The notes under the pieces are model-generated. The model was not told the DNA's origin. It searched no databases and worked only from the letters and a program-made list of their open reading frames with translations. A program made the translations under genes and the position numbers. A stretch of DNA of 64,000 nucleotides, taken from Macrostomum lignano. Its lineage: Eukaryota. The stretch is taken from the NCBI GenBank assembly GCA_002269645.1, contig NIVC01001187.1, positions 124,001 to 188,000 on the forward strand, given 5' to 3'. Positions 12,521-60,715 of the stretch are shown in pieces; the first letter of the stretch is position 1; every line of letters begins with the position of its first letter.

Positions 12521-17198
<4,678 letters not shown>

Positions 17199-18062: not shown

Positions 18063-19373
18063 TCAACAGTTGAGGCCGTAGCCCAGGCCGCCCGGAATGG
18101 CGAACGGGAACGGATTGGCCGACAGCAGCTGCGTCAGCGCGTCTGTCCCGCTGGCCGCGGCGGCGACGCCACCGGTCGAGACCGTAGCGGGGCCGGTCAG
18201 GCCGGCGCCGGCGCCAGTCAGAGAGGCCGCGCTGCTGACGGCGCCAGGCGACTGCAGCTGCTGCTGCTGAGCGCGCAAGCGCAGAAAGTCGAAGATCGGC
18301 GGCACCTCGGCGCTGGCGGGCAGGTTCAGCGCCGCCTTGATGGCCTGATCGTCCAGCGGCGGGCAGGCAGCCAGCACGGCCGGGTCCGGCGACAAGGAGC
18401 GGCCCGTCATGGCGGCGATGAGGTGCAGCTGCTGAGTGAGCAGCCAATAGCGACGCCGCTGCTCACCAAGCAGTCCCTGCCCAGCTGGCGCGGCAGCAGC
18501 GGAGGCCGCAGAAGTCGACTGCGAGGAGCTGGGCACAGACAGGCGGCGGCCGGAGCTGCGGACCGGCCGAGGCGACAGCGCGGCGATGGCAGCGGCGGCG
18601 CTGTGCTGATGGTAGTGCTGGTGACCGGCGGCCGCAGTGTGGGCGGCGGCGGCAGCGGCAGCGGCGGCAGCGGCGGCGGCGGCGGAGGGGCTAGTGTCGA
18701 ACTCGCCTGCCAGCTGCGGGGGTGGCGGCGGGAAGGAATGACGCATTCGGCTCGGCGTAGTGTGCCGGCGCTGCTGGATGGCGCTCGGGCTGCCGCGGCT
18801 GACGAGCTCCGATGGCGGGGAGGCGGCGGCAGCAGCGGCAGCGGCTTTCGAGACGATGGGAGACGTGACGGTGCGCGCTGGCACGGCCTCCTCATCGCTC
18901 GGCGTCTGCGTGGCGACTGTGGCAGTGCGTACGGCGCGCGCCTCCTCGGAGCACTTGAGCTCTTCTAGAAGCCGGATGAGGTCCTCCTCCTCCTTGGCGA
19001 TGACTTCCTCGTCCTTCGGTGGCAGCGGCGCGGCATCTTTGGCCTCGGGGCCGAGGATCTTCTTGCGCAGGTAGTTGCGGATGTGCAGCGGCGGGTGGAA
19101 GAACATGTCCAGGTTGATCTCGCGCCGCGCTGTCGGGTCCATGTGCTGGCAGGCGCAATCGCCGTACAGCACGAAGTTCTTGCAGCAGATCACGAGGCCG
19201 GCCGGGAACGACTCGTAGAGAAATCGGGGGTGAAAGATGCGAACGCGCTTGGCCGGGTGGACCAGCATGCAGTCGCCTTTGCAGCCGCTGTTCTCCAGGA
19301 ACTCCTGGCACACCGGGTGCATGTAGGGGCCGTGGATGTAGTGGTTAAACACTTCTCTTGGCAGGTAGGCCAT
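18063..19373 (-). CDS. Intronless Muscleblind-like tandem CCCH zinc-finger protein, divergent, with an Ala/Ser/Pro-rich tail
   Basis: VCQEFLENSGCKGDCMLVHPAKRVRI..LVICCKNFVLYGDC..FFHPPLHIRNYL follows the MBNL pattern CREF..C..C.FAHP..VIAC..C..YLHPP.HL. First ATG at 19373 gives 436 aa. Confidence 0.7.
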   Translation of the reverse strand: MAYLPREVFNHYIHGPYMHPVCQEFLENSGCKGDCMLVHPAKRVRIFHPRFLYESFPAGLVICCKNFVLYGDCACQHMDPTARREINLDMFFHPPLHIRNYLRKKILGPEAKDAAPLPPKDEEVIAKEEEDLIRLLEELKCSEEARAVRTATVATQTPSDEEAVPARTVTSPIVSKAAAAAAAASPPSELVSRGSPSAIQQRRHTTPSRMRHSFPPPPPQLAGEFDTSPSAAAAAAAAAAAAAAHTAAAGHQHYHQHSAAAAIAALSPRPVRSSGRRLSVPSSSQSTSAASAAAAPAGQGLLGEQRRRYWLLTQQLHLIAAMTGRSLSPDPAVLAACPPLDDQAIKAALNLPASAEVPPIFDFLRLRAQQQQLQSPGAVSSAASLTGAGAGLTGPATVSTGGVAAAASGTDALTQLLSANPFPFAIPGGLGYGLNC

Positions 19374-20390
19374 CTTGGACTGCGGACTCTGCTGTCTTGT
19401 CGGATCTCTTCTGCCTGATAAAACTACACCTCTCTCTGACAATTGAGGGTTGGGACCAGGTCTTTAAACTTGTGTTAGCCCACCTCAGCACCAACCCCTC
19501 CCCAGCCCTTCTCAGGCGGCGAAGGATTAGGCCGCAGCCAATCAGAACGAAGCTCATTAATAATAAAGTGCCAACGCCGGGGGGCAAAACAAGCTCTCAC
19601 ACTGACTAAACCAACCGAATCTAAAAATAGAAACGTTTGGACAGAGGGGGTAGAAGGGCGATGACTCAGCTTAGTCAGCAGGGGTTGACTATAATTTGCC
19701 TTATCTGGCCAATCGATTGATTCAGCGACTGTACGCACCGATTTTTCTTACCCCCCTTGCGACCCCACTCCACTCCCCCAGGCCCGCTTCTTCTCCTTTC
19801 ACTTCAGTGGCAGCGATGATAAGGGTTGAATACACATGGCCAATAATTCACTTTAGTGCACACACCCAGACCCAGCCTACACATTTAATCAATGTGGTGC
19901 AATTAATTCAGCTCAATATTTCACAATAAAACCGCGACTCGGTAAATAATTCTGAAATCAATTTATTTCTGGAAGCTGGATAGATCGCAACTTAACGTTT
20001 TATAAGCAAAAATTAACTTGCATAGAACCTAAAAAAATCGGAAGCATTGCAATATAATCATCATAAACGCACCACCGCACATTACAGAAATATGATTCCA
20101 AGCAGAAGAAGCATTAAAGCGAACAGAAATAAATAGCAGCCATATAACAAGCAGCCTACAAAGACATTTCTAAAAATGACTTTTAATTTCTCATCATTTA
20201 CCATACATAAAAAAGACTTCATAGGTACTGAATAGATTTACTTAAAAGCAGGCATCATAAGTGAAAACAAATACGAATTTGAGATTCTTATAGATGAAAG
20301 GGAAAATATATTTATTCAATACAAAAGCTGCTAAGCTGGGTACCAAAACAGTGCGAAATGCGACTGTCAGATTCAAGGAATCAGGAATAC

Positions 20391-21880
20391 TCAGGTAATG
20401 TAGGCCCTGACAGCTCCCAGGATGCGGGATCCGCACTGCGGACAGGCCGAACTCGAGCTCAGGCAGCCGCGGCACAGCAAGAAGTGCGCGCACGGCAGGG
20501 TCACGTGATCCCGGGTGCGCTCTCGGCACAGCAGGCACTTATCACTCTGAGCTGCGACCTCTGCGTCCTCCTCCACGGAGATCTGCGAATGAAAGCCCGG
20601 GTGACCGGACTTCTCTGCAGCCTGCGCTGACTGGGGCTTGGAACTTCTGGCTGCTTGGGCTCGGGATTGAAGGGCTTCTGATTTCTGCTGCTCCAGTGCG
20701 GGTCTCTGCTGCTCCAGTGCGGGTCTCTGCTGCTCCAGTGCGGGTCTCTGCTGCTCCAGTGCGGGTCTCTGCTGCTCCAGTGCGGGTCTCTGCTGCTCCA
20801 GTGCGGGTCTCTGCTGCTCCAGTGCGGGTCTCTGCTGCTCCAGTGCGGGTCTCTGCTGCTCCAGTGCGGGTCTCTGCTGCTCCAGTGCGGGTCTCTGCTG
20901 CTCCAGTGCGGGTCTCTGCTGCTCCATTATGGATCTCTGCTGCTCCAGTGCGGGTCTCTGCTGCTCCAGTGCGGGTCTCTGCTGCTCCAGTGCGGGTCTC
21001 TGCTGCTCCAGTGCGGGTCTCTGCTGCTCCAGTGCGGGTCTCTGCTGCTCCAGTGCGGGTCTCTGCTGCTCCAGTGCGGGTCTCTGCTGCCGCTCCCCTG
21101 ACGCTCCCGACTCGTTCAGCGTTGCGCAGTCGCTCAGCACGGCCTCCACGTCGATCACGTGACCCCAGTCGGGCTGCAGCTCCTCGAACTCGCGGATCAT
21201 CTCGATGAGGTCGCCCGGCCTGCAGGCCAGCTGGCCGCCCCGAGTCATGAAGTGCCGGCAGGCGCAGTACAGCACGCTGCTCCTGGCGAAGCCGAACGAC
21301 TCGACCAGACCGAGCATCGATCTGCGCTCGAGCAGGTCGCTGCTCAGCTTGGCGAGCGCGCGTCTCAGCTTGGCGGAGGTGGCGACGACCCGGTCGTGTC
21401 GCTCGCTCAGCATTCCGTGAGCAACCTTGAGCAGCGTGAGCAGCTCGCACTGCTCGCCTCCCAGCTGCTCGTGAAGCCGCAGCGGCTCGTCGGTCGGGCC
21501 GCCCGGCCGCACCGGAAGCCGGCAGCCGCAGTGGAAGCAGCGAACTGCTCCGGTGGCCGCCTCATCAGCCGGCAGGAAGAGGCCAGCATCCGCCCAGCGA
21601 TACCGGGCCGCCTCATCAGCCAGGAAGGGCGCCGCCGACCGACTGAGCGACCGCAGCCGCGTCGCGTACTCGGCGAAAGCGGGGAACCTGGCGGCGGTGA
21701 CGCAGAACAGCAGGCTGCCTGGAAGGAAAATTGTGTGCTGTTAGTTCCATCGCAGACTTTTGATATTGCAGCAATATTTTTAATGAACACACCACTGAGC
21801 AAGTTACCTCTCGTGTAGAAGCTTGCGCTGTCTGCAAGTGTCAAGCAGAGCTGCTTGCTGAATGCGGAGCTGCCTTCCAT
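20391..21880 (-). CDS. IAP-like copy 1: BIR, UBA-like, 19x heptad linker, RING (type A)
   Basis: Exons 21880-21808 and 21718-20391, phase-1 GTAACT..CCTTCCAG intron. BIR: RLRS..AGLF..CFHC..H..C. UBA-like: ESFGFARSSV..DLIEMI. RING: CLLC..PCAH..C..C..CPQC..AYIT. Confidence 0.9.
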
Positions 21881-21965
21881 TCCGCAGTTTGTGCAGTGGC
21901 GTTTGGTTTCGCTCGTTTCTGCAAAATCTGCAGTGTTTGCAGAGGGGCTGTTTGGATACAAGCAA

Positions 21966-21973
21966 CTTATATA
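21966..21973 (-). promoter_or_regulatory. Candidate TATA box of IAP copy 1
   Basis: TATATAAG ~85 bp upstream of the inferred ATG. Confidence 0.45.
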
Positions 21974-22357
21974 TGCGGGCTAACATCTATATTTACTTAG
22001 TGCTTGGCTAAAAATAGCCCCACCCAAGTGCTTGGACTCTCCGATCGCAAGCACGGGGGCTTCCCGTGTAATTTGCTTGCAGGCCGAAAATAGTCCGAAT
22101 TGCAACTTCCTCATTCTGCAGTACGAGTTGCTGGTCATGTAGAACCCAACTGACTGAGTACAACATGTGCACAAATAGCCAGCTAGAGCCTCAACAAAAG
22201 GAACTTGAAGTTCGCAATCATTGACGTAATCTTTTCATTTTTTAGGTACACTAAATTAGCGATTTTCGATTTTCGATTTCCATTATTTTGAAGTACGAGC
22301 TGAAACCTATTTTAAGCCATTGAATTGTAGGAACAATGAGCTGTGTCATGCATCAGG

Positions 22358-22955
22358 GAATGGATTGCTAATCTAGCCTATCACGGGTGCAGGAATAGAA
22401 TGGATTGCTAATCTAGCCTATCATAGGTGCAGGAATAGAATGGATTGCTAATCTAGCCTATCATGGGTGCAGGAATAGAATGGATTGCTAATCTAGCCTA
22501 TCACGGGTGCAGGAATAGAATGGATTGCTAATCTAGCCTATCATTGATGCAGGAATAGAATGGATTGCTAATCTAGCCTATCATGGATGCAGGAATAGAA
22601 TGGATTGCTAATCTAGCCTATCACGGGTGCAGGAATAGAATGGATTGCTAATCTAGCCTATCACGGGTGCAGGAATAGAATGGATTGCTAATCTAGCCTA
22701 TCATGGATGCAGGAATAGAATGGATTGCTAATCTAGCCTATCACGGATGCAGGAATAGAATGGATTGCTAATCTAGCCTATCACGGGTGCAGGAATAGAA
22801 TGGATTGCTAATCTAGCCTATCACGGGTGCAGGAATAGAATGGATTGCTAATCTAGCCTATCATGGATGCAGGAATAGAATGGATTGCTAATCTAGCCTA
22901 TCACGGGTGCAGGAATAGAATGGATTGCTAATCTAGCCTATCACGGGTGCAGGAA
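22358..22955. repeat. 40-bp minisatellite, ~15 copies
   Basis: Unit GGAATAGAATGGATTGCTAATCTAGCCTATCACGGGTGCA. Confidence 0.95.
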
Positions 22956-23768
22956 TGAAATAGTTTGACTTGTTAAAAGATTCACTCAATTCTGGTTTGC
23001 ACCTTCACCAGACAAGACAAAAACCTGTGCTATCACAATGTCTGTACACTAATTTTCTTAGCTATATGCGAGCATGCATCACTCGTGCGAATTAAAACCA
23101 TCTTTGATGGCGATGTCAACAAGCTTTGACAGGCATCAGAGACTAAGGGCAGAACCCCGTCAATTTTACAAGTTTTGCGGCACAATGCCCGTATCGGGGC
23201 TGGTCGCGAGCCCAGGTCCCTCCTGCTTAGCAACCATTCAATGGAGTAGAATGAGAGGTCTCTAGCTGACTGGCTCAGGACATTCGCCGCCAGTCCTGGA
23301 ACCCAAGTTAAGCAGAGTTGGCCACGGTTAGTACGCTGCTACATAGACTTTTTGCGTCACCCCCTGAAGGCAGACATGCGTGAGTTGAGCTCCAGCTCAC
23401 CAGCTGAGCTGTGGTGACGCGAGAGTTCGAACCCCACACGACATAAACCGGAGCTAAGACAGTCCAAAGCATTGTGTCTTTGAAATAAATCTTTGCACGC
23501 GATTCCAACAACAGAGACGGCAAAATTCAATCAGTTTTTAAAAACCCATTAGGCAGTAATGCAATGCTGGGAAGTTGTAAAATACGAGTATATTACGAGG
23601 TATTATGGCTATTGAGCTGAGTAAACTCTCTAGTTAAAGCTAAGAGACATTCGTACTTTAGCCCTGGATTAAGTGGAAATGTCGATCAAACAAGTCATTG
23701 GACAGTAAAATACACCCCACAGCCGCAGTACTGAGCGCAACGGAATAAAAACAGGGCAGCAACGCCAT

Positions 23769-25024
23769 TCAGGCGATAAACGCCCTCAAAGATGCCAGGA
23801 TGCGGCCACCGCACTGTGGACAGTCTGTTCTAGAGCTGACGCAGCCGTGGCACAGGAGGAAGTGTGCGCATGGCAGGGTCACGTGATCCCGGGTGCGCTC
23901 TCGGCACAGCAGACACTTCTCTGAGCAGCCGCCGAGCTCCTTGGGCTTCAGCTGATCAGCGTCGGGAGAAACTGACGGCTGCCGAGCAACACCAACTAGT
24001 GAGCTTGCACCGACTGTGGCTGCCCGGCACATCGCCACCGCCCCCTGCTGCTCCAGTGCGGGTCTCTGCTGCTCCAGTGCGGGTCTCTGCTGCTCCAGTG
24101 CGGGTCTCTGCTGCTCCAGTGCGGGTCTCTGCTGCTCCAGTGCGGATCTCTGCTGCTCCAGTGCGGGTCTCTGCTGCTCCAGTGCGGGTCTCTGCTGCTC
24201 CAGTGCGGGTCTCTGCTGCCGCTCCCCTGACGCTCCCGACTCGTTCAGCGTTGCGCAGTCGCTCAGCACGGCCTCCACGTCGATCACGTGACCCCAGTCG
24301 GGCTGCAGCTCCTCGAACTCGCGGATCATCTCGATGAGGTCGCCCGGCCTGCAGGCCAGCTGGCCGCCCCGAGTCATGAAGTGCCGGCAGGCGCAGTACA
24401 GCACGCTGCTCCTGGCGAAGCCGAACGACTCGACCAGACCGAGCATCGATCTGCGCTCGAGCAGGTCGCTGCTCAGCTTGGCGAGCGCGCGTCTCAGCTT
24501 GGCGGAGGTGGCGACGACCCGGTCGTGTCGCTCGCTGAGCATTCCGTGAGCAACCTTGAGCAGCGTGAGCAGCTCGCACTGCTCGCCTCCCAGCTGCTCG
24601 TGAAGCCGCAGCGGCTCGTCGGTCGGGCCGTCCGGCCGCACCGGAAGCCGGCAGCCGCAGTGGAAGCAGCGAACTGCTCCGGTGGCCGCCTCATCAGCCG
24701 GCAGGAAGAGGCCAGCATCCGCCCAGCGACACCGGGCCGCCTCATCAGCCAGGAAGGGCGCCGCCGACCGACTGAGCGACCGCAGCCGCGTCGCGTACTC
24801 GGCGAAAGCGGGGAACCTGGCGGCGGTGACGGAGAACAGCAGGCTGCCTGGAAGGTCGGTGAGGGAGCAGTGGTTGAGCATTCTCAGCCTATTGACAGGA
24901 AAATCATAGGGCAAGTCAGCCAGCAGTGCAGAGAGGTCTCACCCAGCGCATATTCAGAGTTCCGAGTTCCGAGCTGGCGCAAATTTTGCGCAGTCCGCTG
25001 GCCGAAGACGCCATTGCGCTGCAT
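23769..25024 (-). CDS. IAP-like copy 2: BIR, UBA-like, 8x heptad linker, RING (type B)
   Basis: Exons 25024-24943 and 24847-23769, phase-1 GTGAGA..CCTTCCAG intron. Different linker end and RING (..CHGCVSSRTDCPQCGGRILASLRAFIA). TATAAG at 25094-25099. Confidence 0.9.
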
Positions 25025-25754
25025 CCACAGCCTGGCACTGACGCAAGCTTCTGCTGCTGCTGGCCACTCTGTGCTCTGTGCAAGGCTTGGCAGCTTATAA
25101 GCGCTGCTTGCAAACCGGTTTAGGTTCCAAGTTAAGCATTTGTAGATAACTTTGCCAAGAGACGAAAGTATATTAGGGGATCTCTCACGTACCCCGTAGC
25201 CAGTTATTTCAGTGGAGTGGAAATTTCTATTTTTAACTCTGAGTCTCAGTCTCAGAATGAGTCTCAGAATGCCATGCCCAGTGTACATTGGATGTACATT
25301 TAGAGTGCGCGGCTGGACTAGTTTGAAAGCGGTTTCTGTGAAGCAGCGCAACGCCCTCTAAAAGTAATTTTCTTTGAATGCAATTGCTTCATTGCCCTTC
25401 AAATATATATTTAAAATTTATGGATATGAAAATGTCGTAAATATGCTTTGTAAAATAATCTAACAGATATAAGAGAATACCATTGATTATTCAAAATTAA
25501 CATTTAGTATTTCACTAGCTATTTAGCCCCCCCCCTTTGGGGGGCCTTAAAAATGACACCAAATTGCCATGAATCAAAACTTTCATCAAGAAAGTTTCTT
25601 TCATCAACCCAAAACCCTTTCTCAATCAGCAAATAGTGCTTATCCTTTCAAGCACAAACTCTTAGTGCATATTGTCACTGGCCGGGGCATATTCTGGTCT
25701 ACAGCAGGAGCTCACGGCCTTATACCTCTCTTTATTAGCCTAACTCAAAGAATC

Positions 25755-26360
25755 CCCCAGACAGCAAGCATCCCCCAGACAGCATGCATCCCCCAGACAG
25801 CAAGCATCAGCAAGCATCGCCCAGACAGCAAGCATCAGCAAGCATCCCCCAGACAGCATGCATCCCCCAGACAGCAAGCATCAGCAAGCATCGCCCAGAC
25901 AGCAAGCATCAGCAAGCATCCCCCAGACAGCATGCATCCCCCAGACAGCAAGCATCAGCAAGCATCCTCCAGACAGCATGCATCCCCCAGACAGCAAGCA
26001 TCAGCAAGCATCCCCCAGACAGCATGCATCCCCCAGACAGCAAGCATCAGCAAGCATCCCCCAGACAGCATGCATCCCCCAGACAGCAAGCATCAGCAAG
26101 CATCGCCCAGACAGCAAGCATCAGCAAGCATCCCCCAGACAGCAAGCATCAGCAAGCATCGCCCAGACAGCAAGCATCAGCAAGCATCCCCCAGACAGCA
26201 TGCATCCCCCAGACAGCAAGCATCAGCAAGCATCCCCCAGACAGCAAGCATCAGCAAGCATCGCCCAGACAGCAAGCATCAGCAAGCATCCCCCAGACAG
26301 CATGCATCCCCCAGACAGCAAGCATCAGCAAGCATCCCCCAGACAGCAAGCGTCCCCCAA
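25755..26360. repeat. Complex minisatellite built from CCCCCAGACAGC(A/T)(A/G)GCAT and CAGCAAGCAT modules
   Basis: Modular periodic sequence; all three plus-strand frames open only because the unit lacks stops. Confidence 0.9.
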
Positions 26361-26371
26361 ACCAAGCATAT

Positions 26372-27556
26372 GCTGGGCACTGATATTGAGGAAAAAATTG
26401 CCACAATACGGCACCTATGTACCATTAAACTACTGCCTTTCTGTAGTTTGGAAAGCCCACTCATTAAAATTCATGTGCCTATCTTTGCTGTGTATGGCAC
26501 TATATGTTTCGGTAAACTTTAAAACAAAATATTTTATTCTGGTAGAGTAGCTCGCTTAATAAATAGGAATAAAATGAATGAGAGAACAAACATTAACTCG
26601 TTTTTATTTACTTTAATTCAATTGCCAATGCATTTCGACCCTTGTAGGTCATCGTCAGGGCAGTAGTGAAATTGAAAATTGTAATAAACAGTTGAATAAA
26701 TATACCTGTGATAACTTGAATACACAATATAAATTATTGTACGTAGTTTTCAATCGACACAAGTTAACACACGGTGCAGTAGCGTACACTCCAAGCTAAA
26801 ACACGCTGAGTTGGCGGCTGGCACCCCCCATAGCTAGCTGGCAGTTTAGGCTCGGGTTCTGATCTTTGATGTACATAGAGCACACTTTGAATATCTTAGA
26901 GGGCTATGTCTGCCTGCCAGCGCACCATGCTGAGTTTGGCCAAAATCTTTTGCGCGCCGTGGTTGCTTACAACAGCCACCACATTTAATCCCGGTAACTC
27001 GGTTTTCTGCTTTAAAAGAAATGGCAGTGGTTGTTAGTCTCACAGTAAAGTAGTATTCAAAGGACCCTATAAATTTAAAATACTAAACTTTTTGCAAGCT
27101 CCCGTACTGTAGAAAGCTTTCATACTTTTGCTACTTTATATGCTAATACGAGCAATACCTTGCAATATTATTGCAGAAATGCATGTAGTTCTGGTTAATA
27201 TTTGAGGAACTTGCTACACAAAAAGAATATAGTTATTTTGAAATTTTTCTATAAAACCCATGCTGTTTCCGAGTATTTAAATGTAAACAATTTGTAATGT
27301 TATTTAACTTACTAAATCACAAGCTTGTAATCTTGTACTCTTTTTGTACAAGTATACATTGAGTCTGCCACTTGCTAAGAATTTCTGCTTGTCTTATTAA
27401 CGAGAGCAATTAACGAGAGCAATTGTACACAGATTGTACACAAAGATAGGCACATGAATTTTAATGAGTGGGCTTTCTGAACTACAGAAAGGCAGTAGTT
27501 TAATGGTACATAGGTGCCGTCTTGTGGCAATTTTTTCCCCAATATCAGTTCCCAGC
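26372..27556. mobile_element. Element bounded by 116-bp imperfect inverted repeats, containing a hammerhead ribozyme
   Basis: 26372-26487 is the reverse complement of 27441-27556 (GCTGGGCACTGATATTG.. / ..CAATATCAGTTCCCAGC). Confidence 0.65.
26623..26662 (-). ncRNA. Minimal type-I hammerhead ribozyme
   Basis: Minus strand reads TGCC-CTGACGA-T-GACC-TACAAG-GGTC-GAAA-TGC-ATT-GGCA. Helix I TGCC/GGCA, helix II GACC/GGTC, palindromic helix III ATGCAT. Confidence 0.75.
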
Positions 27557-27930
27557 CTAACCTTTGGTAAGTGAAGTCAGTCCCTTACTGTCTAAAATAC
27601 TTAGATTAGCTTTTTTGACTTCAAAAATGTATTTATTTTTAACTGACTGTTTATTAAAAATATTCTAGTTATCGATAATTTTCAGCTTCAAGAACAGTTG
27701 GAAGCCAAGAGAAGGCATGAAGGTCACGCGAACATGGCACTAACATATAATAGCAAAACTTATCTCGGAATTCACCCAGTGGCTAAATTTGGAACCAGAA
27801 ACCCCCAAGGCCACTTGAGTGCAGCACTGACGTAGGCGTACGTTAATTTATTACGTTGTGCATCAGATGCAACCAGTGAGCCATTACTCACATGCTAAAT
27901 ATAGACTGCAAAGTACATGGCCTGTCCACG

Positions 27931-27949
27931 CCAATAGAACACTATAAAA
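27931..27949 (+). promoter_or_regulatory. CCAAT and TATA motifs of IAP copy 3 (mirrored at 34698-34716 for copy 4)
   Basis: CCAAT at 27931 and TATAAAA at 27943, ~75 bp before the ATG at 28023. Confidence 0.55.
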
Positions 27950-28022
27950 GCACTGCTAGATGTAGGGCTAGCATGGACCAACCAAACAGGCCGCATTCGC
28001 AGCACCCACTGCCAGTCCTGAC

Positions 28023-29383
28023 ATGCCGGCATTCAGCAAAGTCACCGAGGACAAAATACACTCGGCCAGATCGCCCTACAGACTGGGTAAGCAGAGCTGT
28101 CCGCTCTCTTTTACTACTGAAATTTACTCTGCCGTGATGTTAAAAAATTGCTCAACCACTGCTCCCTCACCCACCTTCCAGGCAGCCTGCTGTTCTGCGT
28201 CACCGCCGCCAGGTTCCCCGCTTTCGCCGAGTACGCGACGCGGCTGCGGTCGCTCAGTCGGTCGGCGGCGCCCTTCCTGGCTGATGAGGCGACCCGGTGT
28301 CGCTGGGCGGATGCTGGCCTCTTCCTGCCAGCTGATGAGGCGGCCACTGGAGCAGTTCGCTGCTTCCACTGCGGCTGCCGGCTTCCGGTGCGGCCGGACG
28401 GCCCGACCGACGAGCCGCTGCGGCTTCACGAGCAGCCGGGAGGCGAGCAGTGCGAGCTGCTCACGCTGCTCAAGGTTGCTCACGGAATGCTGAGCGAGCG
28501 ACACGACCGGGTCGTCGCCACCTCCGCCAAGCTGAGACGCGCGCTCGCCAAGCTGAGCAGCGACCTGCTCGAGCGCAGATCGATGCTCGGTCTGGTCGAG
28601 TCGTTCGGCTTCGCCAGGAGCAGCGTGCTGTACTGCGCCTGCCGGCACTTCATGACTCGGGGCGGCCAGCTGGCCTGCAGGCCGGGCGACCTCATCGAGA
28701 TGATCCGCGAGTTCGAGGAGCTGCAGCCCGACTGGGGTCACGTGATCGACGTGGAGGCCGTGCTGAGCGACTGCGCGACGCTGAACGAGTCGGGAGCGTC
28801 AGGGGAACGGCGGCAGAGACCCGCACTGGAGCAGCAGAGACCCGCACTGGAGCAGCAGAGACCCGCACTGGAGCAGCAGAGACCCGCACTGGAGCAGCAG
28901 AGACCCGCACTGGAGCAGCAGAGACCCGCACTGGAGCAGCAGAGACCCGCACTGGAGCAGCAGAGACCCGCACTGGAGCAGCAGAGACCCGCACTGGAGC
29001 AGCAGAGACCCGCACTGGAGCAGCAGAGACCCGCACTGGAGCAGCAGAGACCCGCACTGGAGCAGCAGAGACCCGCACTGGAGCAGCAGAAATCAGAAGC
29101 CCTTCAATCCCGAGCCCAAGCAGCCAGAAGTTCCAAGCCCCAGTCAGCGCATGCTGCAGAGAAGTCCGGTCACCTGGGCTTTCATTCGCAGATCTCCGTG
29201 GAGGAGGACGCAGAGGTCGCAGCTCAGAGTGATAAGTGCCTGCTGTGCCGAGAGCGCACCCGGGATCACGTGACCCTGCCGTGCGCGCACTTCTTGCTGT
29301 GCCGCGGCTGCCTGAGCTCGAGTTCGGCCTGTCCGCAGTGCGGATCCCGCATCCTGGGAGCCGTCAGGGCCTACATTACCTGA
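28023..29383 (+). CDS. IAP-like copy 3: BIR, UBA-like, 13x heptad linker, RING (type A)
   Basis: Exons 28023-28086 and 28182-29383, phase-1 GTAAGC..CCTTCCAG intron; same domain motifs as copy 1. Confidence 0.9.
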
Positions 29384-30804
29384 GCCATTTTGCTACGACT
29401 TTGAAACGCCTTTGTTGGTTCCGGCAGCACATTTTCTAGGATTTCGCGAAGAATTTTCGACTCAACTTTCATGGACGACTCAGGTTGGACTCAAAATGGC
29501 AGTTCTTGCTTGATTTTTCGACTTAAATTTTGATCTACCGGCTGGCTTGAAGTTTGACTGTCGGTCTTTTGCCACAATTGAGTTCTTGGTTGTTTATCTA
29601 GCCTTTCTCTCCGCCTTCAAAGTCTTCAATGCTCTATTGTTTTACTATAATGCGGATAAAGAATAACTGCGTTTTACTTCGATAAAACTTATATTTAAGC
29701 TTTTTATTATGTTTTATAGATTAGTTAGCTTCGTCAAGACTCAAGACGTTAATTGGTTTGTTAAAATGCGCTCTATGAAATATTTTGTACTGTTATTTAT
29801 TATTAACAATAAATAAACCGGTCGTATGAACGAAATTCCAAGTGACTTCTCGAGGGCTTTTCTCAGAGTTTTTGGTGCCCAAAATTTGGTGGGATTTCAT
29901 TGTCGTCTATGCCGTTTAGGAGTATTTAGGACAATGACCTGTGGGCCTATTTCGAGCTCTCAATGAGCTTTTATGCTCCTTACGATACCGAAATATTGTC
30001 CTAAAAATATGAGCAGTCTGGGATCAGCCGCTATCAGGCATGAGGGAGAAACAAATGTTGTGCCTTCGCCTGCAGCTCTGCAGTCTCTGACCCTCATCTC
30101 CGCTCCCCTTCTCTCCCTCCCTGCAGCCTCTGAACCTCATCTCCGCTCCTCTTCCCTCCCTGCAGCCTCTGACCCTCATCTCCCTTTCACTTAGTTTTGT
30201 ATAAATTCTGCACACAATCATCATCGCAACAATATACTAAATCTCTTAGATCTGTCTGACCGATATTTCAGTATGCAGCCTGAATGCCTGAACCGATTTT
30301 TTTCAAACTTGCTGTATTGAATTGGAAATTCTTGTGAGATTGTGTGGGTGTAATTGCATTAAAAAAATAGAACGGGAAGATGGTTAAATATTCGAAAAAC
30401 TGTATTTTCCCCATCTAATTAGTGTATTTTTTTCGCAGTGAGGGCTCAATATGTCTTTGGCCATAGACTAAACTTCAGCTTCTTGGGCTGATGCTACGAG
30501 CTATAAATAATTAAATACGAGTATTCGAAAACATGCTTTTTTGCATAAGGGAGAGATATCAGCCAGTGCACTTTAAAAGTATTGAATTATTGCGCAACTT
30601 TTTTTAATTTTTTTTTTAATTTTTTTTTATTGCGCAACTGTGTATAGGCCTCACTGCTATATATCACTCACTGTGTATATCACTGCTATGTATTTGACTG
30701 CAGTGCCGAAGCATATATGGCTGATGCTAAAAATGGTCTGTCGGTGTGTGCCCCGGTGGGTGCTTGCTACGTCTGTTGGATGCTTGCTGTTTGGCGCCAC
30801 TATA

Positions 30805-31438
30805 CACTCAGCAACATTTAAAACGCAACACTCTAACTAGAAGAAAAATCAACTCACTCAGAAGAGTCAAAGCGCATAGTCTATGGTTCAAATAGAGCTT
30901 CAGAAACGCGTGTAGCCTCCTCTCGCAAGTAACAGGGCGATGACTATGGACTGTTTTCAGATAGAATGATCCAGCTGAGAGAATGGTTCAACAGATGACA
31001 GACGCGGAAAGATGGCGAGCAGTCGGAATGTTGGAAGCAGGTTGTACTCTTCGAACAACAGCAGTTGTACTGCGAAGTTGGTGAAGCACCGTACCTTTTC
31101 TCGCGTGAGCCACGCTTCCAGTGGCTCTGCTCTTCTGTAGCAGACGTAAAACTGTTGAAGGCGACCTCCCGAAGTGGTTCGCAACTGTTCGAAGAGTACA
31201 ACCTGCTTCCAACATTCCGACTGCTCGCCATCTTTCCGCGTCTGTCATCTGTTGAACCATTCTCTCAGCTGGATCATTCTATCTGAAAACAGTCCATAGT
31301 CATCGCCCTGTTACTTGCGAGAGGAGGCTACACGCGTTTCTGAAGCTCGATTTGAACCATAGACTATGCGCTTTGACTCTTCTGAGTGAGTTGATTTTTC
31401 TTCTAGTTAGAGTGTTGCGTTTTAAATGTTGCTGAGTG
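30805..31438. mobile_element. Tc1-like transposon 5' end, present in inverted duplicate at the palindrome centre
   Basis: TA|CACTCAGCAAC ends on both sides. ORF 31260 leftwards reads MTDAERWRAVGMLEAGCTLRTVANHFGRSPSTVLRLLQKSRATGSV, a Tc1 N-terminal HTH. No DDE domain. Confidence 0.85.
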
Positions 31439-31877
31439 TATAGCAGTGAGGCCTATACACAGTTGCGCAATACTTCAATACTTTTAAAGTGCACTGGCTG
31501 ATATCTTTCCCTTATGCAAAAAGCATGTTTTCGAATGTATTCGTATTTAATTATTTATAGCTCGTAGCATCAGCTCAAGAAGCTGAAGTTTAGTCTATGG
31601 CCAAAGACATATTGAGCCCTCACTGCGAAAAATACACTAATTAGATGGGGAAAATACAGTTTTTCGAATATTTAACCATCTTCCCATTCTAATTTTTTAA
31701 TGCAATTACACCCACACAATCTCACAAGAATTTCCAATTCAATACAGCAAGTTTGAAAAAAATCGGTTCAGGCATTCAGGCTGAATACTGAAATACCGGT
31801 CAGACAGATCTAAGAGATTTAAAATATTGTTTTGTGATGATGATTGTGTGCAGAATTTATTCAAAACTAAGTGAAAG

Positions 31878-32630
31878 GGAGATGAGGGTCAGAGGCTGCA
31901 GGGAGGGAGAGAAGGGGAGCGGAGATGAGGTTCAGAGGCTGCAGGGAGGGAGAGAAGGGGAGCGGAGATGAGGTTCAGAGGCTGCAGGGAGGGAGGGAAG
32001 GGGAGCGGAGATGAGGGTCAGAGGCTGCAGGGAGGGAGAGAAGGGGAGCGGAGATGAGGTTCAGAGGCTGCAGGGAGGGAGAGAAGGGGAGCGGAGATGA
32101 GGTTCAGAGGCTGCAGGGAGGGAGAGAAGGGGAGCGGAGATGAGGGTCAGAGGCTGCAGGGAGGGAGGGAAGGGGAGCGGAGATGAGGGTCAGAGGCTGC
32201 AGGGAGGGAGAGAAGGGGAGCGGAGATGAGGGTCAGAGGCTGCAGGGAGGGAGAGAAGGGGAGCGGAGATGAGGTTCAGAGGCTGCAGGGAGGGAGAGAA
32301 GGGGAGCGGAGATGAGGGTCAGAGGCTGCAGGGAGGGAGGGAAGGGGAGCGGAGATGAGGGTCAGAGGCTGCAGGGAGGGAGAGAAGGGGAGCGGAGATG
32401 AGGGTCAGAGGCTGCAGGGAGGGAGAGAAGGGGAGCGGAGATGAGGGTCAGAGGCTGCAGGGAGGGAGAGAAGGGGAGCGGAGATGAGGGTCAGAGGCTG
32501 CAGGGAGGGAGAGAAGGGGAGCGGAGATGAGGTTCAGAGGCTGCAGGGAGGGAGGGAAGGGGAGCGGAGATGAGGTTCAGAGGCTGCAGGGAGGGAGAGA
32601 AGGGGAGCGGAGATGAGGGTCAGAGACTGC
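31878..32630. repeat. 43-bp minisatellite, ~17 copies (only ~2.5 copies in the mirror arm at ~30085-30190)
   Basis: Unit GAGGTTCAGAGGCTGCAGGGAGGGAGAGAAGGGGAGCGGAGAT. Confidence 0.95.
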
Positions 32631-33326
32631 AGAGCTGCAGGCGAAGGCACAACATTTGTTTCTCCCTCATGCCTGATAGCGGCTGATCCCAGACTGCTCA
32701 TATTTTTAGGACAATACTTCGGTATCATAAGGAGCATAAAAGCTCATTGAGAGCTCGAAATAGGCCCACAGGTCATTGTCCTAAATACTCCTAAACGGCA
32801 TAGCCGACAATGAAATCCCACCAAATTTTGGGCACCAAAAACTCTGAGAAAAGCCCTCGAGAAGTCACTTGGAATTTCGTTCATACGACCGGTTTATTTA
32901 TTGTTGATAATAAATAACAGTACAAAATATTTCATAGAGCGCATTTTAACAAACCAATTAACGTCTTGAGTCTTGACGAAGCTAACTAATCTATAAAACA
33001 TAATAAAAAGCTTAAATATAAGTTTTATCTAAGTAAAACGCAGTTATTCTTTATACGCATTATAGTAAAACAATTGAGCATTGAAGACTTTGAAGGCGGA
33101 GAGAAAGGCTAGATAAACAACCAAGAACTCAATTGTGGAAAAAGACCGACAGTCAAACTTCAAGCCAGCCGGTAGATCAAAATTTAAGTAAAAAAATCAA
33201 GCAAGAACTGCCATTTTGAGTCCAACCTGAGTCGTCCATGAAAGTTGAGTCGAAAATTCTTCGCGAAATCCTAGAAAATGCGCTGCCGGAACCAACAAAG
33301 GCGTTTCAAAGTTGCAGCAAAATGGC

Positions 33327-34624
33327 TCAGGTAATGTAGGCCCTGACAGCTCCCAGGATGCGGGATCCGCACTGCGGACAGGCCGAACTCGAGCTCAGGC
33401 AGCCGCGGCACAGCAAGAAGTGCGCGCACGGCAGGGTCACGTGATCCCGGGTGCGCTCTCGGCACAGCAGGCACTTATCACTCTGAGCTGCGACCTCTGC
33501 GTCCTCCTCCACGGAGATCTGCGAATGAAAGCCCGGGTGACCGGACTTCTCTGCAGCCTGCGCTGACTGGGGCTTGGAACTTCTGGCTGCTTGGGCTCGG
33601 GATTGAAGGGCTTCTGATTTCTGCTGCTCCAATGTGGGCCTCTGCTGTTCCATTGTGGGTCTCTGCTGCTGCAGTGCGGGTCTCTGCTGCTCCAATGTGG
33701 GCCTCTGCTGCTCCAGTGCGGGTCTCTGCTGCTCCAGTGCGGGTCTCTGCTGCTCCAGTGCGGGTCTCTGCTGCTCCAGTGCGGGTCTCTGCTGCTCCAG
33801 TGCGGGTCTCTGCTGCTCCAGTGCGGGTCTCTGCTGCCGCTCCCCTGACGCTCCCGACTCGTTCAGCGTCGCGCAGTCGCTCAGCACGGCCTCCACGTCG
33901 ATCACGTGACCCCAGTCGGGCTGCAGCTCCTCGAACTCGCGGATCATCTCGATGAGGTCGCCCGGCCTGCAGGCCAGCTGGCCGCCCCGAGTCATGAAGT
34001 GCCGGCAGGCGCAGTACAGCACGCTGCTCCTGGCGAAGCCGAACGACTCGACCAGACCGAGCATCGATCTGCGCTCGAGCAGGTCGCTGCTCAGCTTGGC
34101 GAGCGCGCGTCTCAGCTTGGCGGAGGTGGCGACGACCCGGTCGTGTCGCTCGCTCAGCATTCCGTGAGCAACCTTGAGCAGCGTGAGCAGCTCGCACTGC
34201 TCGCCTCCCGGCTGCTCGTGAAGCCGCAGCGGCTCGTCGGTCGGGCCGTCCGGCCGCATCGGAAGCCGGCAGCCGCAGTGGAAGCAGCGAACTGCTCCGG
34301 TGGCCGCCTCATCAGCCGGCAGGAAGAGGCCAGCATCCGCCCAGCGACACCGGGCCGCCTCATCAGCCAGGAAGGGCGCCGCCGACCGACTGAGCGACCG
34401 CAGCCGCGTCGCGTACTCGGCGAAGGCGGGGAACCTGGCGGCGGTGACGCAGAACAGCAGGCTGCCTGGAAGGTCGGTGAGGGAGCAGTGGTTGAGCAAT
34501 TTTTTAACATCACAGCAGAGTAAATTTCAGTAGTAAAAGAGAGCGGACAGCTCTGCTTACCCAGTCTGTAGGGCGATCTGGCCGAGTGTATTTTGTCCTC
34601 GGTGACTTTGCTGAATGCCGGCAT
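33327..34624 (-). CDS. IAP-like copy 4: BIR, UBA-like, 10x heptad linker, RING (type A)
   Basis: Exons 34624-34561 and 34465-33327; mirror of copy 3 in the palindrome. Confidence 0.9.
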
Positions 34625-35284
34625 GTCAGGACTGGCAGTGGTTGCTGTGAATACGGCCTGTTTGGTTGGTCCATGCTAGCCCTACATCTAGCAGTGCTTT
34701 TATAGTGTTCTATTGGCGTGGACAGGCCATGTACTTTGCAGTCTATATTTAGCATGTGAGTAATGGCTCACTGGTTGTGTCTGATGCACAACGTAATGAA
34801 TTAACGTACGCAATTAATACGCCAGTTCTGCACTCAAGTGGCCTTGGGGGTTTCTGGTTCCAAATTTAGCCACTGGGTGAATTCCGAGATAAGTTTTGCT
34901 ATTATATGTTAGTGCCATGTTCGCGTGACCTTCATGCCTTCTCTTGGCTTCCAACTGTTCTTGAAGCTGAAAATTATCGATAACTAGAATATTTTTAATA
35001 AACAGTCAGTTAAAAATAAATACATTTTTGAAGTCAAAAAAGCTGATCTAAGTATTTTAGACAGTAAGGGACTGACTGCCTGTCTGCAATGTGCAATTTC
35101 ATTTCATGTTCATGAATTTTTGAAACAAATGCAACCCATTGAGTTCGCGGGTACGCTGCGGAGTTCAGCGAACACTGAACCCTTAAATCTAGATTTAGTG
35201 TAGACTGAAGTCCAAAGTACTGAGAGATAAACATTGCGCCCAGAGTTCGCATAAGTCTATTGATACAAAGTACTGACGCCTGAC

Positions 35285-35828
35285 ACCAGGTAGATCAGAG
35301 CCGTAGGCTAATGGCACTGCAGGTAGATCAGATCCGTAAGCTAATGACACTGCAGGTAGATCAGATCCGTAAGCTAATGACACTGCAGGTAGATCAACTG
35401 TAGGCTAATGACACTGCAGGTAGATCAGCTGTAGGCTAATGACACTGCAGGTAGATCAACTGTAGGCTAATGAAACTGCAGGTAGATCAGCTGTAGGCTA
35501 ATGAAACTGCAGGTAGATCAGCTGTAGGCTAATGAAACTGCAGGTAGATCAACTGTAGGCTAATGACACTGCAGGTAGATCAACTGTAGGCTAATGACAC
35601 TGCAGGTAGATCAACTGTAGGCTAATGACACTGCAGGTAGATCAACTGTAGGCTAATGGCACTGCAGGTAGATCAACTGTAGGCTAATGACACTGCAGGT
35701 AAATCAACTGTAGGCTAATGAAACTGCAGGTAGATCAGCTGTAGGCTAATGAAACTGCAGGTAGATCAACTGTAGGCTAATGACACTGCAGGTAGATCAG
35801 CTGTAGGCTAATGGCACTGCAGGTAGAT
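35285..35828. repeat. 31-bp minisatellite, ~17 copies
   Basis: Unit GTAGGCTAATGACACTGCAGGTAGATCAACT. Confidence 0.95.
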
Positions 35829-36100
35829 GCTCGGTCTTGTCGAGACGTTCAGCTTCGTCAGCTATTGAAAACTGAAAAAATAATCTATAAAGCGATAGCC
35901 AAACTTGACGCACTTGATAGCAACCGAAAGTGGCCCAGCAGACCAAAGGTCACAGTGCAGTGCATTCTTGCCCAAAAATAACTGTGAACCAGAGGACTGC
36001 AGCACAATACTTTATTAGCCTAGCCCAAGCTTTATTCTAAAACCTGTTTAGCTCTCGAGCGAAGCACTGCATCTGCTGGAACTGAGCCTACCGATCCCCG

Positions 36101-37817
36101 ATGCACAGCTGCCGGCTACTTGGAGCCAAGGTTGCCGCGAGACTGCAGCCCGGAACAGCCTACGTGAGCAGTAAGTGAGCAAGCAAAGACCCCCCCATCT
36201 TGTCGGAGTTGGCCTAAACCTGCCGAGCTGATTGACCTCCTTCCAGGCGGCCTGCTGTTCTCCGTCACCGCCGCCAGGTTCCCCGCCTTCGCCGAGTACG
36301 CGACGCGGCTGCGGTCGCTCAGTCGGTCGGCGGCGCCCTTCCTGGCTGATGAGGCGGCCCGGTGTCGCTGGGCGGATGCTGGCCTCTTCCTGCCGGCTGA
36401 TGAGGCGGCCACCGGAGCAGTTCGCTGCTTCCACTGCGGCTGCCGGCTTCCGGTGCGGCCGGGCGGCCCGACCGACGAGCCGCTGCGGCTTCACGAGCAA
36501 CTGGGAGGCGAGCAGTGCGAGCTGCTCACGCTGCTCAAGGTTGCTCACGGAATGCTGAGCGAGCGACACGACCGGGTCGTCGCCACCTCCGCCAAGCTGA
36601 GACGCGCGCTCGCCAAGCTGAGCAGCGACCTGCTCGAGCGCAGATCGATGCTCGGTCTGGTCGAGTCGTTCGGCTTCGCCAGGAGCAGCGTGCTGTACTG
36701 CGCCTGCCGGCACTTCATGACTCGGGGCGGCCAGCTGGCCTGCAGGCCAGGCGACCTCATCGAGATGATCCGCGAGTTCGAGGAGCTGCAGCCCGACTGG
36801 GGTCACGTGATCGACGTGGAGGCCGTGCTGAGCGACTGCGCGACGCTGAACGAGTCGGGAGCGTCAGGGGAAAGGCGGCAGAGACCCGCACTGGAGCAGC
36901 AGAGACCCGCACTGGAGCAGCAGAGACCCGCACTGGAGCAGCAGAGACCCGCACTGGAGCAGCAGAGACCCGCACTGGTGCAGCAGAGACCCGCACTGGA
37001 GCAGCAGAGACCCCCACTGGAGCAGCAGAGACCCGCACTGGAGCGGCAGAGACCCGCACTGGAGCAGCAGAGACCCACAATGGAACAGCAGAGACCCGCA
37101 CTGGAACAGCAGAGACCCGAACTGGAGCAGCAGAGACCCGCACTGGAGCAGCAGAGACCCGCACTGGAGCAGCAGAGACCCGCACTGGAGCAGCAGAGAC
37201 CCACAATGGAACAGCAGAGACCCGCACTGGAACAGCAGAGACCCCCACTGGAGCAGCAGAGACCTCCACTGGAGCAGCAGAGACCCGCACTGGAGCAGCA
37301 GAGACCCATAATGGAGCAGCAGAGACCCGCACTGGAGCAGCAGAGACCCATAATGGAGCAGCAGAGACCCGCACTGGAGCAGCAGAGACCCGCACTGGAG
37401 CAGCAGAGACCCATAATGGAGCAGCAGAGACCCGCACTGGAGCAGCAGAGACCCACAATGGAACAGCAGAGACCCGCACTGGAACAGCAGAGACCCGCAC
37501 TGGAGCAGCAGAGACCCACAATGGAACAGAAGAGACCCGCACTGGAACAGCAGAGACCCCCACTGGAGCAGCAGAGACCCCCACTGGAGCAGCAGAGACC
37601 CGCACTGGAGCAGCAGAGACAGTCCGCATCAGCCTGTTCCATCAGCAAGAATTCAGTTGCATCAGACAGGTGCACGGGTTGCTGGCAAAGTGCCAAGAGC
37701 CAGGTAACCCTGCCCTGCGCGCACCTGCTGCTGTGTGCTGACTGCCTTCAAGCTCGGTCCCGCTGCCCCAGCTGTGGGGTACGAATCTTGGCCTCCGTTC
37801 GGGCCTATCTCGTTTGA
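36101..37817 (+). CDS. IAP-like copy 5: BIR, UBA-like, ~35x heptad linker, RING (type C)
   Basis: Exons 36101-36170 and 36247-37817, phase-1 GTAAGT..CCTTCCAG intron. RING: CTGCWQSAKSQVTLPCAHLLLCADCLQARSRCPSCGVRILASVRAYLV. Confidence 0.9.
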
Positions 37818-38423: not shown

Positions 38424-38951
38424 TCACTCACTCAGCTGGTGTCCCGGCCTGGCCTTCCTGGATCCAACATGCAGCTCACAGAAATGGGGGCTGTTGTTAA
38501 AATCGCAAACGCAGGTGCCCTCCATCAGCTGCCTTTTCAGATAGGCCTTGCTGTGCTCTGGCGTGTTCTGAGCAGCCGAGAGCCGCTGGCAGCGGCCTCC
38601 GGTTGTGTCTGGCGACTGCCCGAGTGGGCAGGGGTTGGGCGGGTCGCACTGCCTCAGGCACGGGCGGTTCCTGGCTCCAGCGGGCAACGGCGGCAGCGTC
38701 ACGGCCGAGTTCATCGGCCGCGGCTCCGCGGGCTTCCCAAGGCTCGCCAGCTGCTGCCACAGCCGGTCGGTGGCCGCGGCCTGAGCCTCCTTGGACAGCG
38801 CAGCTTCAGTCCAGTTGGCCACCTGCACCAGCCGGCGGAACTGAGCCTGCAGACGGTCCAGGAGGTCCTCTTGATAGGCGGGCCGGCCGCGCAGCGACTG
38901 CGGCAGCAGCAGCAGCAAAATTAGCAGCGAGGTTCTCTTCAACAGCGGCAT
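38424..38951 (-). CDS. SCG5: Neuroendocrine protein 7B2-like secreted protein
   Basis: Signal peptide (LLILLLLLPQSLRG). CDPPNPCPLG contains the 7B2 hallmark PPNPCP, followed by C..NTPEHSKAY..CVCD..HFC. The 3' end may be spliced (GTGAGT at 38431). Confidence 0.75.
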   Translation of the reverse strand: MPLLKRTSLLILLLLLPQSLRGRPAYQEDLLDRLQAQFRRLVQVANWTEAALSKEAQAAATDRLWQQLASLGKPAEPRPMNSAVTLPPLPAGARNRPCLRQCDPPNPCPLGQSPDTTGGRCQRLSAAQNTPEHSKAYLKRQLMEGTCVCDFNNSPHFCELHVGSRKARPGHQLSE

Positions 38952-60622: not shown

Positions 60623-60715
60623 GTTTGCTGACTTGCTGCCGTCTGCCTCTAGCAGCAATCGCTGTTGGCATGAAGGAATGAGGGAATAGAGTGAAAATAG
60701 GCGGTTTACATAATC

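Follow-up and report, generated by a model that had tools for sequence, protein, structure and literature searches.

A Hypervariable Coding Minisatellite as a Probable Pre-RING Spacer in a Cluster of IAP-like Genes of Macrostomum lignano

The stretch of Macrostomum lignano DNA analyzed here, hereafter the window, is 64,000 nucleotides long (assembly GCA_002269645.1, contig NIVC01001187.1, positions 124,001 to 188,000) and contains five clustered, two-exon paralogues in mixed orientation, whose products are predicted to be IAP-like RING E3 ubiquitin ligases. In all five, exon 2 carries an array of a 21-bp unit encoding RPALEQQ, and the encoded domains follow the same order, with a highly divergent zinc domain of BIR fold first, then a helical module, the repeat and, at the C-terminus, an IAP-type RING. 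The array, a hypervariable coding minisatellite, is probably tolerated as a spacer ahead of the RING, in a family that evolves in concert, and its length does not appear to be calibrated.

Comparison of three versions of the locus indicates that the array grows and shrinks by replication slippage together with unequal or ectopic exchange, and that gene conversion keeps the array and the coding segment upstream of it (the cassette) near-identical across the paralogues; first exons, introns and RING types are old and diverged. In functional terms, the array would be a tolerated stretch of low complexity, 4-35 heptads long, that links the N-terminal modules to the RING under weak constraint on its length and does not act as a calibrated ruler.

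The Repeat Array and Its Reading Frame

An independent unit-by-unit parse returned 19, 8, 13, 10 and 35 units for copies 1 to 5, each unit being 21 nt long, in agreement with a preliminary description of this DNA that had also placed every array in frame. Indeed, each array lies in one open reading frame (ORF), which runs from the splice acceptor through the array and the RING to the stop codon, and the arrays contribute 56-245 aa to the proteins, as previously estimated. Because the unit consists of seven codons, the reading frame is preserved when the array changes length. Tandem Repeats Finder (TRF) reported 91-100% matches and 0% indels for the five arrays, and the unit given in the preliminary description was matched 79 times at ≤3 mismatches, compared with 0.01 matches expected from dinucleotide-preserving shuffles. 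In a coding minisatellite, units of 10-100 bp follow one another head to tail and keep the frame of a coding sequence (CDS), and this is the organization found.

Array 1 (20684-21090, minus strand; 19.4 copies by TRF) contains 18 consensus units and one RSIMEQQ at unit 8, and array 2 (24045-24219, minus strand; 8.3 copies) has one RSALEQQ among its 8 units. Array 3 (28813-29090, plus strand; 13.2 copies) is made up of 13 identical consensus units, whereas the final four of the 10 units in array 4 (33620-33837, minus strand; 10.4 copies) are variants, RPTLEQQ, RPALQQQ, RPTMEQQ and RPTLEQQ. Array 5 (36878-37620, plus strand; 35.4 copies) is the longest, with 12 unit types among its 35 units and a recurrent pair, RPTMEQQ-RPALEQQ. 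When two other versions of the locus are included, 178 units were parsed, all of them 21 or 24 nt long; 132 are consensus units, and 20 types occur. The 24-nt unit, the sole length variant, has an extra CAG (RPALEQQQ). Three such units stand in array 3 of contig NIVC01000707.1 (L001 10834-11143), where CAG trinucleotide slippage is thus nested in the minisatellite. Six units read RPPLEQQ and so contain a Pro-Pro pair.

Read from the sequence, the consensus unit contains no GT dinucleotide, and canonical splicing from within a pure array is therefore impossible. The arrays are open in all six frames, giving for example AAETRTG and VRVSAAP repeats (at 20684-21090, at 36878-37620 and in the other arrays); consequently, ORF length is uninformative about the coding frame, which follows from the BIR on one side and the RING on the other.

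Gene Models and the Inverted Duplication

Every copy has a short first exon of its own that starts with an ATG, its phase-1 GT donor lying 76-95 nt ahead of the acceptor CCTTCCAG, which is common to all five. Paralogue 1 (20391-21880, minus strand) has exon 1 at 21880-21808, an intron at 21807-21719 and exon 2 at 21718-20391 including the stop codon, and encodes a type A RING; its exon 1 is predicted from the sequence, as is that of paralogue 5. Paralogue 2 (23769-25024, minus strand; RING type B) has exon 1 at 25024-24943, an intron at 24942-24848 and exon 2 at 24847-23769, a structure that agrees with its annotated orthologue P0003. For paralogue 3 (28023-29383, plus strand; RING type A), exon 1 at 28023-28086 is followed by a 95-nt GT..AG intron (28087-28181) and by exon 2 at 28182-29383, and the splice junction agrees with that of the NCBI model P0001 (SPYRL/GSLLFCV, the slash marking the junction). 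Paralogue 4 (33327-34624, minus strand; RING type A), an inverted duplicate of paralogue 3, has exon 1 at 34624-34561, an intron at 34560-34466 and exon 2 at 34465-33327. Finally, paralogue 5 (36101-37817, plus strand; RING type C) comprises exon 1 at 36101-36170, an intron at 36171-36246 and exon 2 at 36247-37817.

Paralogues 3 and 4 had been described as near-identical yet three units apart, which is what was found: they lie in an inverted duplication (27575-35077) whose arms are 97.6-99% identical, and their arrays differ also in unit types, that of copy 3 being pure and that of copy 4 ending in its four variants. The arms, 27575-30599 and 35077-31461, are ~2.4% diverged and enclose an 861-bp spacer (30600-31460). 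Since the arms differ by this amount and in unit content, a fold-back assembly artefact is unlikely. The duplication is missing from both other versions of the locus, which have a single copy in its place, and it represents either a structural variant or an assembly difference. A 43-bp minisatellite is present in 2.6 copies in one arm and 17.6 copies in the other.

Of the 13 ORFs in the three locus versions, 12 are intact, with lengths of 330-522 codons; the exception is copy 5 of contig NIVC01000365.1. This copy-5 orthologue, annotated as P0002 (L002 9697-10846), has a 1-nt deletion at cassette position 217, in the BIR-like region, so that the annotated protein takes an internal Met as its start and has no BIR; the deletion either truly turns the copy into a pseudogene or reflects an assembly error. 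For P0002 and P0003, the full array is included in the annotated CDS.

Variation of Unit Number between Versions of the Locus

The same assembly (Mlig_3_7, GCA_002269645.1) contains the locus twice more, on contigs NIVC01000707.1 (L001) and NIVC01000365.1 (L002 and L003), hereafter contigs 707 and 365. The three versions are homeologues or duplicated chromosome copies, or else haplotypes, taken from the assembly, and do not constitute a population sample. Flank identity to the window is 97-98.7% for contig 707 and 98-99% for contig 365, and that between the two contigs is 96.6-99%.

The preliminary description had called the array a variable-number tandem repeat (VNTR), and the comparison bears this out, as unit number differs between the three versions at every orthologous array. 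In the order window, contig 707 and contig 365, copy 1 has 19, 7 and 20 units, copy 2 has 8, 7 and 4, copy 3 has 13, 14 and 16, and copy 5 has 35, 10 and 15; copy 4, with 10 units in the window, is absent from both contigs. With such differences in unit number, the array qualifies as a hypervariable coding minisatellite. The smallest step is visible in copy 1, where the 630-bp cassettes of the window and contig 365 are identical, yet the arrays have 19 and 20 units, with the RSIMEQQ marker at position 8 in the former and at position 9 in the latter, as produced by a one-unit change.

Noncoding arrays vary as well, with copy numbers (window/707/365) of 15/23/15 for a 40-bp unit, 17.6/25.5/25.6 for a 43-bp unit and 17/87/20 for a 31-bp unit, others being stable. 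The instability is therefore general to minisatellites of this genome and not specific to the coding array. Tandem repeats account for 29.5% of the window, in 42 arrays (29 of at least 150 bp) with periods of 3-416 bp; among them are a perfect (ATCT)108 at 12845-13279, a 44-bp unit repeated 62 times at 50190-52895 and a CT-rich array with periods of 16, 41 and 416 bp at 15424-17009. Such a repeat content is in line with the published M. lignano genome, of which simple and tandem repeats make up 15% and which also contains 180 Mb in duplicated blocks at ≥95% identity (PMC5730564).

Gene Conversion up to the Array End

The preliminary description had noted that the RING type switches at the end of the array. 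This is the case: homology between paralogues stops at the last LEQQ and is followed by RINGs of type A in copies 1, 3 and 4, type B in copy 2 and type C in copy 5. Upstream, the 630-bp cassette, which extends from the acceptor to the array, shows just 0-11 differing sites among its 13 copies (98-100% identity), and paralogues resemble each other as much as orthologues do, leaving no orthology signal. Cassette sites 41 and 217 occur in all four gametic combinations, thereby failing the four-gamete test, and variant unit types are common to different paralogous arrays. The RINGs, in contrast, differ by a synonymous divergence of 0.35 between types A and B and of 0.76-0.79 between either of these and type C. 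A near-identical cassette upstream of old, diverged RINGs places the array at the 3′ edge of a gene-conversion tract. Thus, as judged from sequence comparison, the cassette and array of old paralogues are homogenized by gene conversion, with the array as the 3′ limit of the tract.

Alignments among paralogues break exactly at the exon-2 acceptor and at the array end. On the 5′ side, homology ends at the acceptor or, between copy 2 and copies 3 and 4, ~33 nt inside the intron; copy 1 has the type A RING in common with copies 3 and 4 as far as the stop codon and does not share their 3′ untranslated region (UTR). Conversion mediated by cDNA would explain a boundary at the splice acceptor and was considered, but is thought unlikely because the 3′ UTRs are not coconverted. 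As for the earlier suggestion that the array is a crossover site, it does coincide with a recombination boundary, synonymous divergence being ~0.01-0.03 upstream and 0.35-0.79 downstream; exchanges probably also start within the array.

Domains Flanking the Array

The RING is the sole domain that Pfam recognizes in these proteins (PF13920), with scores of 31.2-38.5 bits in 5 of 5 copies against a cutoff of 27. In paralogue 3, the C3HC4 RING of type A, with the stop codon, occupies 29231-29383 (plus strand), and its counterparts lie at 20391-20543 (copy 1, type A), 23769-23921 (copy 2, type B), 33327-33479 (copy 4, type A) and 37665-37817 (copy 5, type C). All eight ligands are kept in the three RING types. 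Other Pfam matches (DUF5892, Prok-RING_4, TPR_MLP1_2, APG6_N and ATG14) fall on the repeat or the RING and were set aside as low-complexity or redundant.

The N-terminal zinc domain, at 28238-28489 (plus strand) in paralogue 3 and with a counterpart in all five copies, has the ligand pattern C-x2-C-x18-H-x7-C, compared with the C-x2-C-x16-H-x6-8-C by which BIRs are defined. It had been termed a BIR in the preliminary description, and a family profile and a structure model recover that fold, although the domain is undetectable by Pfam in the window proteins: the Pfam BIR models matched neither these proteins nor, with E values as high as 10 allowed, their first 230 residues, and reached 15.8-22.1 bits in four distant family members, below the cutoff of 22.9. 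Likewise, phmmer found no match for the N-terminus in the PDB. A profile built from six sequences, a window protein and five distant paralogues, whose C, C, H and C ligands do not vary, matched BIR domains exclusively in the PDB (E 6e-9 to 1e-3); the best match was NAIP (6e-9), followed by XIAP BIR3, ILP-2 and DIAP1 (~1e-5 to 3e-5), with survivin and BRUCE weaker. Comparison by hhalign with a protein containing four BIRs gave 90% probability. AlphaFold (AF2), given the small family alignment, modeled the N-terminal BIR and helical part with pLDDT 81 and pTM 0.77, and all of the top 50 listed Foldseek matches of this model contain a BIR, the highest probability being 1.00 and the highest target TM 0.78. 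By profile and by predicted structure, then, the N-terminal zinc domain has a BIR fold, of which it is a divergent outlier.

Two extra residues precede the His ligand (x2/x18/x7 spacing), and two positions that are occupied by tryptophans in the groove are not Trp in the family consensus, according to HMMER alignments to the NAIP BIRs; in the window proteins, they are Arg or Pro and Leu. In type II BIRs, both of these tryptophans form part of the groove in which peptides are bound. Binding of an IAP-binding motif (IBM) or of caspases is therefore doubtful, and the earlier designation of the N-terminal module near the array as a substrate-binding end is uncertain on sequence grounds. Two nonsynonymous, paralogue-specific substitutions were also observed in the zinc domain. 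Copies 3 and 4 alone differ by HEQPGGEQC versus HEQLGGEQC, a Leu>Pro change at cassette position 256 (28437-28439 and 34210-34208) located between the His and the last Cys ligand, and copy 1 shares with its contig-365 orthologue a Cys>Tyr change at cassette position 118.

The helical module that follows (28502-28723, plus strand, in paralogue 3) is predicted by AF2 to contain helices at residues 108-131, 133-140, 146-159 and 168-181, and carries the motif SFGF...RHFM..GG...RPGDLI, the loop being conserved as (S/T)(F/Y)G(F/Y). The module may resemble the UBA of XIAP and cIAP1; hhalign aligned its GF loop, in the expected register, with the MGF loop of that domain at nonsignificant probabilities of 1.3% (XIAP) and 0.4% (cIAP1), against UBA sequences that are approximate. 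The module profile found no UBA in the PDB, and the cIAP1 BIR3-UBA-CARD-RING entry 3t6p aligned by Foldseek over 186 columns with a TM of just 0.29.

Selection and the Role of the Spacer

Differences among the cassettes comprise 14 synonymous and 13 nonsynonymous changes, compared with a neutral ratio of ~1:2.8 (pN/pS 0.33; binomial p = 0.004). The RINGs have a dN/dS of ~0.4, and each RING type is protein-identical across the three locus versions. Purifying selection thus acts on the flanking domains, which makes it probable that the genes function. In the array itself, 16 distinct nucleotide changes were counted, concentrated in Ala and Leu codons; they are ~5 synonymous to 11 nonsynonymous, which is near neutral. 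Orthologous genes with 7 or 20 heptads, or with 10 or 35, show no other signs of decay, and the comparison of sequences leans toward a unit number that is only weakly constrained.

The alternative closest to the preliminary description is an adaptive ruler, in which a semirigid spacer, with a unit number selected in each paralogue, would set the reach from the BIR and helical module to the E2~ubiquitin bound by the RING, making the cluster a graded series of ligases that differ in reach or autoinhibition. Linker geometry can matter in IAPs, as cIAP1 is autoinhibited by the packing of BIR3-UBA-CARD on its RING, and the array is what separates the N-terminal modules from the RING, with purifying selection acting on both of its flanks. 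Yet a selected length fits poorly with orthologous arrays that differ up to three-fold (7, 19 and 20 units in copy 1; 10, 15 and 35 in copy 5), with adjacent noncoding minisatellites that are as unstable, with within-unit substitutions that are near neutral and with a 42%-identical paralogue, P0011, that has a nonrepeat linker. The ruler would also draw on the single-sequence AlphaFold prediction for the 13-unit array, one continuous helix over residues 202-327 with pLDDT ~89, although six RPPLEQQ units sit uneasily in a rigid helix and the same whole-protein model is poor outside the repeat. AF2 tends to overpredict helices for perfect repeats. Given this tendency, the proline in each heptad and the RPPLEQQ units, the predicted helix is accorded little weight, and as a model it neither confirms nor refutes the "extended" spacer proposed earlier. 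Altogether, a ruler calibrated by selection seems unlikely.

The heptad period and the Leu at a fixed position, again with the AF2 helix, could instead point to an oligomerization element, that is, a coiled coil or helical assembly that dimerizes the ligases and whose length would set the stability of homo- and heterodimers of the paralogues or their choice of partner. IAP-type RINGs act as dimers. The Pfam matches to coiled-coil families (TPR_MLP1_2, APG6_N and ATG14) are, however, weak, all far below their cutoffs, and represent low complexity. A coiled coil has hydrophobic residues at positions a and d and no helix breakers, whereas the array has a single Leu position and thus one strongly hydrophobic residue per heptad, Gln at a+3 (the "d" position) and a proline in every unit, with two in some. 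A canonical coiled coil is unlikely because there is one Leu per heptad, and the view of the preliminary description that proline argues against a true coiled coil holds; oligomerization through the array is accordingly very unlikely.

It is also conceivable that the genes are not functional, being decaying duplicates, or that the length differences are assembly artefacts of a repeat-rich, partly polyploid genome, which is hard to assemble owing to its duplicated blocks. The 1-nt deletion in copy 5 of contig 365, the array collapsed in the annotation P0001 and the inverted duplicate copy 4, present in the window version alone, all fit such a view. This reading is nevertheless highly improbable in light of the nearly complete set of intact ORFs (12 of 13), the synonymous excess, the RING types that are protein-identical across versions and the arrays that contain solely in-frame units; moreover, the substitutions and differing unit contents of the palindrome arms are unlike a fold-back artefact.

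Several observations weigh against the tolerated, uncalibrated spacer favored here. The model P0001 (BOX15_Mlig008615g1; L001 10001-11436, NIVC01000707.1) has 6 units compared with 14 at its own locus, its CDS lacking ~177 nt (59 aa) of the array, and retention of the full array in the mRNA is thus not certain for all copies; the shortfall is probably a collapse in short-read transcript assembly or mapping and not a real intron. Differences between the locus versions could in part be long-read assembly errors. Copy 2 is short (4-8 units) and copy 3 intermediate (13-16) in all three versions, as a ruler would have it, and if the confident AF2 helix were true, array length would translate directly into distance. 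Lastly, three versions that show no visible constraint on length remain compatible with a function of that length.

Family Distribution

A search with the N-terminal 220 aa found just two matches among 5.8 billion proteins, both hypothetical proteins of M. lignano with 98-99% identity. An exhaustive HMMER scan of 1.84 billion representatives gave nine matches, eight of them from M. lignano and the ninth the weakly matching protein with four BIRs; to the two close matches it added one close and five distant M. lignano relatives (24-42% identity). On these sequence searches, the family has so far been found in M. lignano alone, and its members are annotated merely as hypothetical proteins. With the array plus RING as the query, P0002 was the sole match among 8000 candidates, and in this nonexhaustive search no RPALEQQ array was seen outside the cluster. 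A literature search found no paper on Macrostomum with "BIR domain", nor any under the gene identifiers.

The nonrepeat linker of P0011 reads ...RDEQQLETPML...Q8... and, by its sequence, may resemble a progenitor of the repeat unit. The family extends beyond the cluster to other M. lignano loci (P0013, P0006, P0007 and P0009), and some members have no RING. P0013, a UniRef model of 593 aa, consists of two halves, each with a helical module and a RING, and is probably a fusion of two adjacent genes. The UniRef names of several members (cyclin, nuclear receptor, RNA polymerase and LCIB) seem to be mistransferred.

Comparison with Known Systems

The closest parallel is with RING-bearing IAPs (XIAP, cIAP1/2, DIAP1/2 and ML-IAP), whose BIR is followed, in some members, by a UBA and a CARD before the C-terminal RING. 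Common to them and the window proteins are a BIR fold with an invariant C/C/H/C zinc site and a PF13920 RING at the extreme C-terminus; between the two, the window proteins have the helical module in the place of the IAP UBA. The RINGs of the cluster have what we take to be the Cys/His spacing of IAP RINGs such as that of cIAP1, and end in short tails (AYIT, AFIA and AYLV), each with an aromatic residue three positions from its end. Differences are the single, Pfam-invisible BIR, with its two-residue insertion before the His and its groove Trp positions that are not Trp, and the linker, which here is a minisatellite of 4-35 units; to our knowledge, such a linker has not previously been reported for any IAP.

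As a repeat, the array resembles other coding VNTRs (mucins, involucrin, PRDM9 zinc-finger arrays and yeast FLO adhesins) in its near-identical head-to-tail units with a length that is a multiple of three, in its copy-number differences between haplotypes or paralogues, in variant-unit maps that reflect slippage plus exchange and in its association with conversion or recombination. Unlike these, it forms an interdomain linker of an E3 ligase and not a surface, structural or DNA-binding repeat, and it occurs in five adjacent paralogues that exchange units. With the ER/K single α-helix spacers (myosin VI/X, caldesmon and trichohyalin-like E/Q/R repeats), it shares an E/Q/R-rich composition, a predicted long helix between two modules and the notion of a length-dependent effective concentration of the two ends. 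An ER/K helix is marked by densely spaced opposite charges at i/i+4 and by stability in isolation in experiments. The charge density is, however, far lower here, with one Glu and one Arg per seven residues, each heptad contains a proline, and the helix is a predicted one. Lastly, the cluster recalls concerted gene families such as the globin, RH and opsin clusters in having a homogenized part (98-100%) with diverged flanks, a lost orthology signal and four-gamete violations, but differs in that the tract boundaries are a coding minisatellite and an exon-2 splice acceptor.

Other Genes in the Window

Neighboring ORFs encode a C2H2 zinc-finger protein (1693-2391, minus strand), a DnaJ-domain protein (59375-60658, minus strand) and an unrelated RING-H2-type finger (62653-63195, minus strand). 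The product of ORF 38424-38951 (minus strand) is secreted-looking and has a weak, subthreshold match to 7B2/secretogranin V. The long GC-rich ORFs 7205-8611, 8673-9944 and 18063-19442 gave no Pfam match.

Significance

The family joins IAP-type RING ligases with hypervariable coding minisatellites, a combination that we did not find described. The mechanism that generates the array is an ordinary one. For annotation, the locus is a warning: the BIR is missed by Pfam, the array is collapsed in short-read gene models, and gene copy number differs between assembled versions of the locus.

A bolder proposal is that the cluster is a natural allelic series, in which selection would act on linker-length variants generated by the minisatellite that alter reach, autoinhibition or dimer pairing, and conversion would spread one N-terminal module over three RING outputs. 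This is distinctly unlikely; if true, it would amount to a built-in, fast diversification of ubiquitin-ligase geometry, perhaps in immunity, in the germline or in stem-cell control. Should linker length affect activity, the paralogues and homeologues would provide a ready series of 4 to 35 heptads on interdomain distance in a RING E3, and M. lignano is tractable for transgenesis. Even if the array is neutral, the cluster is a clean case of genes that evolve in concert, a minisatellite setting the limit of their conversion tract.

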